64,000 nucleotides of DNA from Raja brachyura (lineage: Eukaryota): contig OY740817.1 in assembly GCA_963514005.1 (NCBI GenBank), positions 14,570,001 to 14,634,000 of the forward strand, given 5' to 3'. Under the pieces are notes generated by a model. The model saw only the letters and a list, made by a program, of their open reading frames with translations. It was not told the origin of the DNA and ran no database searches. Both the position numbers and the translations under genes were made by a program. Position 1 is the first letter of the stretch. Every line of letters begins with the position of its first letter. This document shows, piece after piece, positions 3,877-6,461 of this stretch.

Positions 3877-4179
3877 TAACTCAGCAAGACAGGCAGCATC
3901 TCTGGAGAGAAGGAATACAGGGCCGGCCTTGGGAGGTGCGGGGCCCAATTGGGAACAATTTTGGTGAGTCCCAGATTCCCAGCCAAGGTGTGCAGAATCA
4001 TAGAAATACAAATAAAGTCTATTATAGACTGCCTTGAGACTGTCAGGGGAAAGCGGAACAAGAGATATAGACGGTACTAAGGACAAATGAATGGAAGATA
4101 TGCCTATACCTCCCGTTTCCCTTTCCCTTGACTGTCAGTCTGAAGAAGGGTCTCGACGCGAAATGTCACTTATTCCGCT

Positions 4180-4830
4180 CTATGAACGTTGTTTTCGTCC
4201 GTCTGTCCGCGGGTTCGCTCTCTCTTGGTGCCGGCTCTTCTCCGCTCAACTCCTCCAAACACACACAGCATGTCCGGCAGATCGGTGCGGGCCAAGACCA
4301 GGAGCAGGGAGAAGGATGACATCAAACGGGTCATGGCAGCTATCGAAAAAGTACGGAAATGGTAAAGGGGGGAATTAAAAAAAAATACCCAAAGGATGTT
4401 TAACAAAACTAGGGCGGGCGATCGCTCCGTGTCAGTGTCGCAGGGAATGGGGAGGGTGAGGGGGGGCACGGCCGGTCTTTATAGTAAGGGAGCCCCGCGC
4501 CAGAGTAATGTACTCTCGGTTCAGATAGATCTACCCCGGGTGGAGGGGGGAGAGAGCGGTAGAAGGGGAGGGGGAATGGAGAAGGGGGAGGTGAGTCGTT
4601 CCCTCACGGTCCCGGGGCAGCGCTCCCGCCCCTCCAGTCGCCGTGCTTCACGCACACAGCCCCGGTTTTCCCTCCTCTCTCCCCGGGGAGACGCGGTGAA
4701 CACTACACAGAGGGCCGGGCCGGGCCGGGCCGGGGGTTGGAACAACGTTGACAAACCTCGGCCTCAGCTCACACCCGTCCGCCCGTTCCCCGGCATCCGC
4801 CCCTGACGCTATAAGCCCCCCATGAGAAAT
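4180..4830 (+). promoter_or_regulatory. CpG-rich 5'UTR/exon 1/intron 1 segment accompanying the BCL7A exon
   Basis: High GC and CpG density, GGGCCGGGCC repeats and GC boxes. The part from 4560 is repeated at 12204-12475. Confidence 0.5.
4270..4361 (+). pseudogene. BCL7A: BCL7A exon 1 (orphan copy, two substitutions)
   Basis: ATG at 4270 gives [32 protein letters not shown]|GTAA, versus canonical [31 protein letters not shown]. 92-nt phase-2 exon. KRV points to BCL7A rather than BCL7B. No exon 2 found in the window. Confidence 0.88.
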
Positions 4831-5204
4831 TGCATCTAACTCTGTAGCTCAGCAGGACAGGCAGCGCAGCGACTCTGGGGAGATGACCCTTCTTCAGACT
4901 GAACTGAACTCTCGTCGGTGACAGTACTTATGATTGTCTGAAGAAGGGTCTGGACCAGAACCGCGACCCTCTCCCCAGAGCCCCTGCCCGTCCCGCTGAG
5001 CCACCACAGACAGGGGGTTGAAGGTAGACACAGGGGGGTCCACCTTCAACTTCAGAGCCAAACAAAAAACACGGAGTGCTGGAGGAACTCAGCGGGCAAG
5101 GTAGCACCCGAGGAGGGAACGCATCACTTATCAGGAGCCCCCACGGGCCAGGACTCTCCCCACCCCAACAGATAGGAACCGCAGGTGCAGCCATCACCGC
5201 AAAA

Positions 5205-5402
5205 CGTCTAAGAAGGAACTGCAGATGCTGGAAAATCGAAGGTAGTCAAAAATGCTGGAGAAACTCAGCGGGTGGGGCAGCATCTATGGAGCGAAGGAAA
5301 TAGGCAACGTTTCGGGCCGGGTCTGAAGAAGGGTCTCGACCCGAAACGTCGCCTATTTCCATCGCTCCATAGATGCTGCAGTTTCTCCAGCATTTCTGTC
5401 TA
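5205..5402. repeat. Penelope-derived palindromic element (representative copy)
   Basis: Arm AAGGAACTGCAGATGCTGG..CTCAGCGGG..GCAGCATCT..CGTTTCGGG followed by its reverse complement. Arms match the 3' end of the Penelope at 45030-45125. Others at 11560-11785, 12855-13060, 19430-19655, 34021-34230 and 34995-35225. Confidence 0.8.
5323..5350 (+). ncRNA. Minimal type-I hammerhead ribozyme motif (Penelope-associated)
   Basis: CTGAAGA-A-GGGT(CTCG)ACCC-GAAAC-GTC: CUGANGA and GAAA cores, stem II hairpin, palindromic ACGU stem III, GUC site. Also at 7715, 12967, 15580, 45035 (+) and 26691-26718 (-). Confidence 0.65.
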
Positions 5403-6461
5403 CCGCAAAACGTCAACGATTCCGGGAATGCCCAGGCAACAGGGTGAGAGAGAGGGAGTGAGAGAGCTAGAGAGAGACGAGAGAGAGAGAGATGGAGAGA
5501 GTGAGAGACAGAACGTGGGTCGGTAGGTAAATTGAATGACTAACCTGCTGCACACCAAGAAGCTCTCCAAGAAGAAGTCCTCAATCTTGATGGTGAGCTT
5601 TAAGAAATTCTCAATGTTTCATCAATGCATCAATCTACATTCCTCAGTAAATGTAAGTGTGATTTGAACAAGTGTTAATGACGCCGCGTGAATTGTATTC
5701 AAAGGAACACAGCGTCATTAATACTTGTTCAAAACACAATTACATTTGCCGAGGAATGTGGATCTACGCATTGATTACACATGTTAACTACTGGCTGTTA
5801 ACAAGTGCTACATTAGCAGTTAACAAATCGTCAGTGTCCGATGGCCGTGCAGCGGTTGTTATCTATGTTCGTTTTGTAAGAAAATCCATATGGCAAATGT
5901 TTTTTAAAAAATCTTTATTTAACAAAGCGAATTTCCGTACGAAATACGGAAAATTAACGCGGGGCCCCCTTAGGCGCGGGGCCCAATTGGGAGAAATCCA
6001 GTCCAATCGGCTTAAGGTCGGCCCTGAAGGAATCACCCATTCCGTTTTGGGTCGAGACCCTTGCTGGTGCAGCCCAACCAAGTCTGCATCGACCATCGAT
6101 CACCCGTGTACACTGGTGCCGTGTTATCCCACTTTCTACACACTAGGATCAATTTACAGAGGGCCAATTAACCTAAAGACCCGCACATCTCACTGCGAGC
6201 GCCACTGGCTGAGATATAAATGCAGTCTTGACACCAATGATCACATCCCCCGCACCCCACCTATTGTCAAAGTAGTGCAGGGGGCTGGTCATTGGCCTGA
6301 GGCTGGGGCAGGGCTGGTGTAACATGTCACCCACAATAGACAGGGTGTGTGTTTGAGATCGGTGAGTGTGAGATGTGAGTGTGTGTGAGACGCGTGAGTG
6401 TGTGTGTGCGCACGAGTGTGTTAGTGTGTGTGTGAGCGTTTGTGTGTGTGAATATTATATA

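Follow-up and report, generated by a model that had tools for sequence, protein, structure and literature searches.

An intriguing question is raised by this locus: how did the 5' end of a host gene come to lie between the ends of a DNA transposon? Within the window, by which we mean the whole 64-kb stretch of DNA that was analysed, an insertion of 2.1 kb (3918-6026) carries a BCL7A-like first exon between its terminal inverted repeats (TIRs) and is flanked by a short duplication (TSD). We regard it as probably a decayed copy of an amplified, non-autonomous cut-and-paste family with a transduplicated BCL7A 5' piece.

Features of the element, its borders and its partial duplicate, in window coordinates (., no strand assigned)
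Feature	Position	Strand	Basis or remark
Left TSD copy, AAGGAATA	3910-3917	.	7/8 match with 6027-6034; within a hairpin-repeat copy that resumes beyond the element
Left TIR, CAGGGCCGGCCTT	3918-3930	+	12/13 match with the reverse complement of 6014-6026
Left terminal region of the non-autonomous element	3918-4036	+	ORFs without Pfam match
Subterminal motif GCGGGGCCCAATTGGGA, palindromic core CCCAATTGGG, left end	3938-3954	.	Motif count
Hairpin-forming stretch (4037-4137) and truncated arm of a high-copy hairpin repeat (~4100-4188), adjoining the cargo	4037-4188	.	Repeat self-comparison
BCL7A-like 5'UTR, ~80 nt	4189-4269	+	Match of the 4992-nt X16 contig; CpG observed/expected 1.14
BCL7A-like coding exon 1, 31 codons, phase-0 end, private changes K9 and E14	4270-4362	+	Pfam BCL_N
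GT donor (GTAAAG) and ~480 nt of intron-1-like, CpG-rich DNA	4363-4840	+	Contiguous with the exon; multi-copy like the exon
Diverged complete hairpin-repeat copy	4845-5005	.	Arms 4885-4899 and 4936-4950
Nested complete hairpin repeat	5209-5401	.	Flanking 13-bp direct repeat ACCGCAAAACGTC at 5196-5208 and 5402-5414
GA-rich microsatellite	5434-5520	.	Self-comparison; left out of contig matching as a repeat
Right terminal region with internal inverted repeat (76-nt arms 5614-5689 and 5707-5782)	5531-6026	+	No Pfam match
Subterminal motif GCGGGGCCCAATTGGGA, right end	5976-5992	.	Motif count
Right TIR, reverse complement CAGGGCCGACCTT	6014-6026	-	Direct reading and pattern search
Right TSD copy, AAGGAATC	6027-6034	.	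Direct reading
Second, partial element copy (equivalent to 4560-6026)	12204-13715	+	7.7-kb tandem duplication

The nature of the cargo is revealed by its exon. The ORF at 4270-4362 matched Pfam BCL_N (PF04714) with E=4.4e-13 and 49.3 bits (cut-off 25) over profile positions 2-29 of 49, and only the exon-1 part of BCL_N is represented in it. By tblastn, 29 of its 31 residues were identical to salmon BCL7A, whose first 31 residues recur in the opossum entry; a word search returned 94% identity for all named matches, which were BCL7A of fishes and opossum. The 58-aa ORF comprising 5'UTR and exon retrieved only real, spliced BCL7A entries. The best-match names over only 31 residues would thus point to BCL7A rather than to BCL7B or BCL7C. 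A public contig of run X16 departs from the window just where the exon ORF ends, and a database entry consisting of exon 1 only has the same length of 31 aa. Beyond it, the DNA remains CpG-rich (4363-4840: GC 0.62; CpG observed/expected 0.79 as against 0.54 for the window background), and because the exon continues unspliced into a GTAAAG donor and intron-like DNA, the cargo is genomic and not mRNA-derived. Judged from this contiguity, 4363-4840 would be homologous to intron 1 of the real BCL7A; the 136-aa ORF of this part had no protein relatives in the search. The analysis thereby bears out the sequence-only reading, which had recognized a BCL7A 5'UTR, coding exon 1, GT donor and CpG-rich intron start, and had proposed the capture of intron-containing genomic host DNA.

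Neither BCL7 exon 2 (EKKWVTVGD onward) nor any other BCL7 exon was found on either strand of the 64 kb by motif search and tblastn, the 58 kb of window downstream of the exon included. With exon 1 of BCL7A, a subunit of the BAF chromatin-remodelling complex, the window copy shares 29 of 31 residues as they occur in fishes and opossum, but it differs in comprising only exon 1, in its changes at positions 9 and 14, and in its location inside a transposon. These two changes (Glu9 to Lys and Ala14 to Glu) fall on positions that do not vary among the four BCL7A N-termini compared, and Lys9 is a private CpG-to-CpA change (A at 4294), as nearly all other copies have G and hence the canonical Glu. The element at 3918-6026 is probably an old, decayed member of a non-autonomous family, which holds a gene fragment and not a working BCL7A; this copy, which has no transposase, would be dead.

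The borders of the element tell how it arrived. Its 13-nt TIRs agree at 12 of 13 positions and the 8-bp TSD copies at seven of eight, in line with the hAT-type TIRs, the duplicated 8-mer (AAGGAATA/AAGGAATC) and the shared subterminal motifs that had been read from the sequence before, the latter being recovered as GCGGGGCCCAATTGGGA near both ends. Allowing up to two mismatches, the TIR pattern occurred six times in the window as against 1.44 expected, a number reached by 0 shuffles, and with up to one mismatch it occurred only at both element ends and at 13703-13715, within the tandem duplicate. The motif GCGGGGCCCAATTGGGA, possibly a transposase-binding site, has three exact copies in the window (0.2 expected), which are located at both element ends and in the tandem duplicate. 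We estimate the chance of encountering a TIR pair of equal quality together with a 7/8 duplication within 5 kb at ~1e-6. Once the element is removed, the alignment of its rejoined flanks with a further hairpin-repeat copy runs across the junction, 11606-11655 corresponding to the left flank and the stretch from 11662 onward to the right one. Since the flanks without the element make up one continuous hairpin-repeat copy, a single insertion took place, and both TIRs come from one event rather than from separate insertions. What the TIR pair of this insertion encloses is host-gene-derived, non-transposon sequence, as is required of a Pack-TIR. The rejoining itself had been noted in the sequence-only reading, but its name for the repeat arm, Penelope-derived, gained no Rfam support. 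Rfam and tRNA scans of 3400-6460, by which the hairpin repeat might have been typed as Penelope/hammerhead or SINE, returned nothing above threshold, hammerhead included, and the label Penelope-derived was dropped.

The same borders bear on another possibility, namely that a BCL7 paralogue has its functional first exon here, the TIR-like ends being remnants of separate insertions upstream and in intron 1. It is true that the ORF is intact over its 31 codons, that its donor is good and its surroundings CpG-rich, and that first introns of large genomes can exceed the 58 kb available downstream. However, the flanks, with their 7/8 duplication, rejoin as one repeat copy, only ~80 nt separate the upstream repeat from the ATG, and K9 and E14 affect residues that are identical in all named BCL7A proteins retrieved, K9 by private CpG decay. 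As, in addition, dozens of other copies exist, exon 2 is missing from the window and the downstream DNA consists of LINE reverse-transcriptase debris, we hold a working paralogue to be extremely improbable.

To which superfamily does the element belong? Its 8-bp TSD (7/8) and its 13-nt TIR starting with CAGGG agree with the features by which hAT elements are recognized, an 8-bp TSD and TIRs of ~10-25 nt with a YARNG start. The P superfamily has an 8-bp duplication and CA..G (CANRG) ends as well, so the CAGGG start does not discriminate between hAT and P. Many hATs prefer nTnnnnAn target sites, which the TSD of the element does not fit. No ORF of the element matched a transposase or a remnant of one in Pfam, and among the ten longest ORFs of the window only LINE reverse transcriptase, and no transposase, was encountered. 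The earlier proposal of a non-autonomous hAT fits the duplication and the CAGGG ends; hAT would be a candidate assignment, and P an alternative with the same diagnostic ends.

Within the element, the cargo is bracketed by inverted pieces of the hairpin repeat, which contain a perfect 18-nt inverted repeat (4135-4152/4885-4902). Most copies of the hairpin repeat in public contigs depart from the window sequence at 4176, and the stretch 4186-4192 is crossed into the 5'UTR by ~60-71 contigs of lower depth per run, each with at least 39 nt on either side. Hairpin fragment and 5'UTR being linked in these contigs, their junction belongs to the element family as such. The nested hairpin repeat, with its depth in the millions, represents a separate and far more abundant family; at least one hairpin repeat would have entered the element later, making a 13-bp duplication of its own.

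Evidence for a family came from the public contigs of four runs, representing three organisms, with runs X1, X3 and X8 being DNA. X16, a run of another organism, is rated probably DNA. At position 4294 in the exon, G was read in 50, 68 and 46 distinct contigs of X1, X3 and X8, whose total depths (3542, 13047 and 4013) compare with single-piece depths of ~6-14, 14-41 and 5-12, respectively, while position 4520 in the intron part was covered by 64, 79 and 56 distinct contigs. Summed depth of the cargo exceeds that of single-copy pieces by a factor of ~100 or more, where summed contig depth is not to be equated with copy number. Exon, intron part, hairpin/5'UTR junction and right terminal region were each present as tens of sequence variants at similar total depth. 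Hence, the window does not hold the sole BCL7A exon 1, spliced to exons downstream: tens of variants accompany it, and 58 kb pass without an exon 2. By depth, the family apparently numbers a few hundred copies across several related genomes. Contig pieces at 4044-4157, 4081-4203, 4089-4227 and 4106-4247 have 86-91% identity to the window and, at this identity, derive from other copies of the element. Coverage in the DNA runs falls at 4248-4254, so that most copies differ just upstream of the ATG, in a CA-rich stretch. Among the best-supported contigs listed, none crossed a TIR into a different flank, and the case for transposition of the composite is accordingly made from the number of copies and their divergence, together with the TIR/duplication structure of this one copy.

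Besides the tandem duplicate, the search with TIR and motif found no further independent element copies in the 64-kb window. The stretch 4560-6459 matches 12204-14148 at 97.2%, with the same right flank and a junction inside the intron part of the cargo; the tandem duplication took the tail of the element together with 6 kb of flank. The TIR and subterminal motif at 13665-13715 were considered as an independent insertion and rejected, as they belong to the tandem duplicate with the same flank. Since the right end at 13703-13715 shares its flank by tandem duplication, it provides no evidence of mobility.

Could the BCL7A fragment have become multi-copy by other means, within a composite repeat built from hairpins or within a segmental or tandem block, and have entered the TIR element secondarily, so that the latter was not its vehicle? 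The bracketing of the cargo by inverted hairpin pieces with their perfect 18-nt repeat would agree with such a history, as would the tandem duplication demonstrated in this region of the window and one X16 contig that matches 4844-5129 and diverges on both sides. Moreover, among the contigs listed none joins a TIR to the cargo, and no single one spans from upstream of 4037, where the outermost termini lie, into the cargo beyond 4189. Overlapping short contigs, however, chain from 4044 to 4247, and the ratio of mean depth between cargo (4224-4532) and right end (5769-6077) is near 1 (0.83, 0.90, 0.51 and 1.0 in the four runs), the right terminal region being comparable in depth with the cargo in 4/4 runs, whereas the neighbouring repeats differ from both by 2-3 orders of magnitude. 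Furthermore, hairpin depth is in the millions and cargo depth in the thousands, so the cargo is no standard part of the hairpin repeat. We consider a secondary entry of the fragment rather unlikely.

In plants, many cases of gene fragments captured by DNA transposons are on record. As in plant Pack-MULEs, where transduplicated gene fragments, often 5' and GC-rich, are picked up and the chimeric element is then amplified, the window element joins gene-derived DNA to an amplified transposon. Unlike it, Pack-MULEs belong to the Mutator superfamily and are characterized by 9-11-bp duplications, long TIRs and plant hosts. In 100 animal genomes, 370 Pack-TIRs were reported, 208 of them hAT (Tan et al. 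2021, Nat Commun 12:4280; PMC8277862); they are almost always single-copy, with only 4/370 being multicopy. For instance, the multicopy Pack-hAT-N8_XT of Xenopus tropicalis carries 291 bp of CAPSL 5'UTR and is found on three chromosomes (PMC8277862). With these animal Pack-TIRs and Pack-hATs the window element has in common that it is a non-autonomous TIR element with an 8-bp duplication and an unspliced host 5' end of a few hundred bp including an exon. In contrast to the mostly single-copy elements of that survey, the contigs point to a family of tens of variants or more, for which depth suggests a few hundred copies, in several organisms. Our literature search returned no report of a BCL7A-carrying transposon and none of Pack elements in cartilaginous fishes.

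Copies of such a family might act as portable first exons, with a CpG-island-like 5' end, the BCL7A ATG and a phase-0 donor, which start or extend chimeric transcripts at some sites. We judge this to be very unlikely, and equally so the further idea that the BCL7 N-terminal peptide is grafted onto host genes and that the ~5-kb contig of X16 is such a chimera. This 4992-nt contig of high depth matches 4193-4366 only: it starts ~4 nt from the left boundary of the cargo, ends its match at the donor and continues in unrelated sequence. In addition, exon and donor are open in the window copy, the other copies with G at 4294 encode the canonical Glu9, and exon-derived Pack-TIRs are often transcribed (Tan et al., PMC8277862). 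Nevertheless, an end at the donor is what is expected for spliced BCL7A mRNA of the true gene, which explains the contig more simply and would make it an indirect sign of a separate parental BCL7A locus, albeit in a run of another organism; none of the runs listed as containing the stretch is recorded as RNA, X16 itself being rated probably DNA, and no downstream exon in the window is tied to the donor. Against a working mobile ATG-plus-donor cassette, as suggested by the sequence-only reading, speak also the decay changes at positions 9 and 14 of the window copy.

Returning to our preferred explanation, an amplified non-autonomous family with a transduplicated gene piece, we propose that an ancestral element would have taken up ~80 nt of BCL7A 5'UTR, the whole 31-codon exon 1, the GT donor and ~480 nt of intron 1, this cargo being bracketed by fragments of a very abundant hairpin repeat. 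A single copying event would have brought in the host DNA, with template switching in gap repair after excision as the most likely mechanism, as was proposed for Pack-type elements. Subsequently, the composite may have been amplified in trans by the transposase of an autonomous relative to a few hundred copies, either before or during the divergence of the sampled organisms. The window copy itself inserted into a hairpin-repeat copy and would then have decayed, later receiving a hairpin insertion and having its tail tandemly duplicated.

If this is true, a BCL7A element present at ~hundreds of copies in several organisms would stand out among animal Pack elements by its success. In annotation, its copies will give rise to false BCL7A gene models and to spurious first exons, as each brings along an open ATG and a splice donor together with the conserved peptide; they are at the same time raw material for exon shuffling.

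The element at 3918-6026 of the window is a single insertion, bounded by terminal inverted repeats (TIRs) and a target-site duplication, that holds a genomic fragment from the 5' end of BCL7A. Its left end (CAGGGCCGGCCTT, from 3918) and the reverse complement of its right end (CAGGGCCGACCTT, to 6026) match at 12 of 13 positions, inverted similarity being limited to these 13 nt, and the 8-mers directly outside are AAGGAATA (3910-3917) and AAGGAATC (6027-6034). With up to two mismatches, the TIR pattern occurs six times in the window versus 1.44 expected from shuffles, none of which reached six; with up to one, it is confined to both element ends and 13703-13715. 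Furthermore, the subterminal motif GCGGGGCCCAATTGGGA is common to both ends (the window has three exact copies where 0.2 are expected), and we estimate the odds of so good a TIR-plus-duplication pair arising by chance within 5 kb at about 1e-6.

Both flanks belong to one hairpin-shaped interspersed repeat, extremely abundant, with contig depth up to millions. The empty site was reconstructed by a script that cut out the element together with one of the two duplicated 8-mers, and the remainder was aligned to the repeat copy at 11590-11800: the left flank corresponds to 11606-11655 and the right flank continues from 11662, unbroken across the junction. The two ends therefore stem from one insertion event and not from separate insertions. 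The sequence-only reading had thus described correctly the inverted-repeat ends, the shared subterminal motifs, the duplicated 8-mer and the single repeat arm rejoined by removal of the element; its Penelope-derived label for that arm was not borne out, as Rfam and tRNA scans of the repeat found no family at threshold, hammerhead included, and no tRNA-like part. The hairpin repeat spans about 200 nt, with two complementary arms around a GTCTGAAGAAGGGTC-type loop, and recurs at 5209-5401, 11560-11795 and many other sites at depths in the millions; the 13-bp target duplication of the copy at 5209-5401 indicates insertion in the manner of a retroposon or MITE. Left of the element, a CpG-rich repeat (3400-3914) has undergone a lineage-specific burst, with summed contig depths over 3400-3811 of 1-3 million in organisms A and B of the sequencing runs (organisms coded by letters) and 24,000-99,000 in E; in its last bin (3812-3914), depth reaches millions in each of the three.

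As to classification, the hAT label originally given to the element fits the 8-bp duplication and the CAGGG-starting ends, but the P superfamily fits them too, so that neither feature is diagnostic (the end rules are YARNG for hAT and CANRG for P). Because of this ambiguity we call the element hAT-like and claim no membership.

The cargo contains an open reading frame of 31 codons (4270-4362) followed by a GTAAAG donor. It matches Pfam BCL_N (E=4.4e-13, 49 bits, cut-off 25), and its peptide is identical at 29 of 31 residues (94%) to short database entries for BCL7A from fishes and opossum. Its length is that of the first exon, equalled by one exon-1-only database entry (human), and it ends where a 4992-nt contig of run X16 diverges from the window. 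The roughly 80 nt before it (4189-4269) behave like a 5'UTR. The downstream part (4363-4840) has a GC content of 0.62 and a CpG observed/expected ratio of 0.79, versus 0.54 in the window background, and its ORFs found no relatives in protein and Pfam searches. A motif search and tblastn with non-human BCL7A N-termini found no further BCL7 exons on either strand of the 64 kb. Since the exon is continuous with unspliced DNA, the cargo is genomic and not mRNA-derived, in agreement with the 5'UTR, exon 1, donor and CpG-rich intron start initially proposed as an intron-containing capture.

None of the element's own ORFs has a Pfam match. The element is non-autonomous, as first supposed, and a partner transposase is absent nearby among the window's ten longest ORFs: five lack a match, and the others fall into reverse-transcriptase families of LINE type (RVT_1 or zf-RVT).

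Features of the element and the window, and positions at which contigs of the sequencing runs differ from the window copy
Feature	Position	Details
Hairpin-forming stretch and truncated hairpin-repeat arm	4037-4188	
Junction difference, A>T and T>C	4186-4192	about 59-71 contigs per run, each with at least 39 nt on both sides; total depth about 5100-5400 (X1), 15000-17000 (X3), 6600-6800 (X8)
Exon difference, A>G	4294	50/68/46 contigs, total depth 3542/13047/4013 (X1/X3/X8)
Intron-part difference, T>C	4520	64/79/56 contigs, total depth about 5437/19610/3003 (X1/X3/X8)
Complete hairpin repeat, diverged	4845-5005	
Complete hairpin repeat, later nested insertion	5209-5401	own flanking 13-bp direct repeat ACCGCAAAACGTC
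GA microsatellite	5434-5520	
Right terminal region		500 nt; internal inverted repeat with 76-nt arms
LINE-type reverse-transcriptase ORFs (RVT_1, zf-RVT)	28899-31025, 24127-24762, 42067-43125, 61707-62441, 8560-9555	longest (28899-31025) open, 708 aa, within an AT-rich block (GC 0.31)
Duplicated segment	39744-40358 and 53061-53686	about 620 nt, 95% identical

Of the words sampled from the stretch, 26-41% also occur in public runs of eight coded organisms (A-H), and fewer in those of I and J; the runs holding these words come from 14 studies and none is recorded as RNA. Contigs of four runs (X1, X3, X8, X16) were aligned to 3400-6460 at a likeness of at least 85%, and the best-supported matches are considered here. 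Because one X1 contig of 355 nt equals 6146-6460 without any difference, organism A is either the species of the window or a very close one. At certain positions of the cargo, almost every contig differs from the window while the contigs agree mutually, and so BCL7A exon 1 is not confined to this single place, which would have spoken against mobilisation. Among the matches listed, single pieces have depths of about 6-14 (X1), 14-41 (X3) and 5-12 (X8). The contigs at 4186-4192 span the junction between hairpin fragment and 5'UTR, while the high-copy hairpin repeat itself diverges at 4176; also among the matches listed, pieces at 4044-4157, 4081-4203, 4089-4227 and 4106-4247 cover parts of this region at 86-91% identity and so come from other copies with the same architecture. 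Mean depth of the cargo (4224-4532) is 0.83, 0.90, 0.51 and 1.0 times that of the right terminus (5769-6077) across the four runs. Neighbouring repeats lie two to three orders of magnitude away from both, and also vary between organisms. On our reading, cargo and terminus were amplified together as a single family of perhaps a few hundred copies; since summed contig depth is not copy number, this figure gives no more than the order of magnitude. At the CA-rich 4248-4254, just upstream of the ATG, family depth falls to 0-28 in DNA runs versus thousands on either side, so most copies differ there from the window copy, probably by an indel or in microsatellite length.

The 4992-nt X16 contig has a depth of 148, far above other X16 pieces. 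Its match to the window is limited to 4193-4366 (10 mismatches, 15 gap letters) and breaks off exactly at the donor. Most simply, and probably, it is a spliced BCL7A mRNA of organism E; the type of the run is uncertain, DNA being more probable than RNA. On the left, the match starts no more than about 4 nt from the cargo's border. The contig may have broken at a repeat that the source locus also carries, or there may be another cause; a chimeric transcript is the less likely alternative to a genuine BCL7A mRNA.

The window copy itself has decayed. The A at 4294 encodes Lys9, where the family G gives Glu9, the residue of four BCL7A N-termini compared; the change turns a CpG into CA, as is usual when methylated repeats decay. 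Glu14 likewise replaces the Ala common to the same four. Together with the nested insertion, these replacements mark the window copy as dead. Furthermore, its tail was later duplicated in tandem (4560-12203 and 12204-20075; units of about 7.7-7.9 kb, 97-99% identity), with the junction near 12200, at microhomology TAGAAGGGGA, inside the BCL7A-intron part, so the second right end at 13703-13715 is uninformative on mobility. The duplication may be genuine and recent, or it may have arisen in assembly; an N run lies at the same relative place in both units (6462-6674 and 14149-14329).

One TIR-bounded insertion with a BCL7A fragment, and numerous diverged copies of the cargo, its junction and the terminus across several organisms, agree with the main point of the capture-and-movement reading. 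Following the Pack-type model, a host fragment was probably copied once into a non-autonomous element by template switching during excision-gap repair, and the composite was then probably mobilised in trans and amplified. The BCL7A element is of the same kind as the animal Pack-TIRs (TIR transposons carrying captured host-gene fragments) of Tan et al. 2021 (PMC8277862), who reported 370 in 100 animal genomes, 208 of them hAT-associated and 13% exonic, with a median capture of 224 bp. Only four of these were multicopy, the worked example lying on three chromosomes, and the BCL7A element is set apart from the surveyed Pack-TIRs by its apparent copy number and its presence in several organisms.
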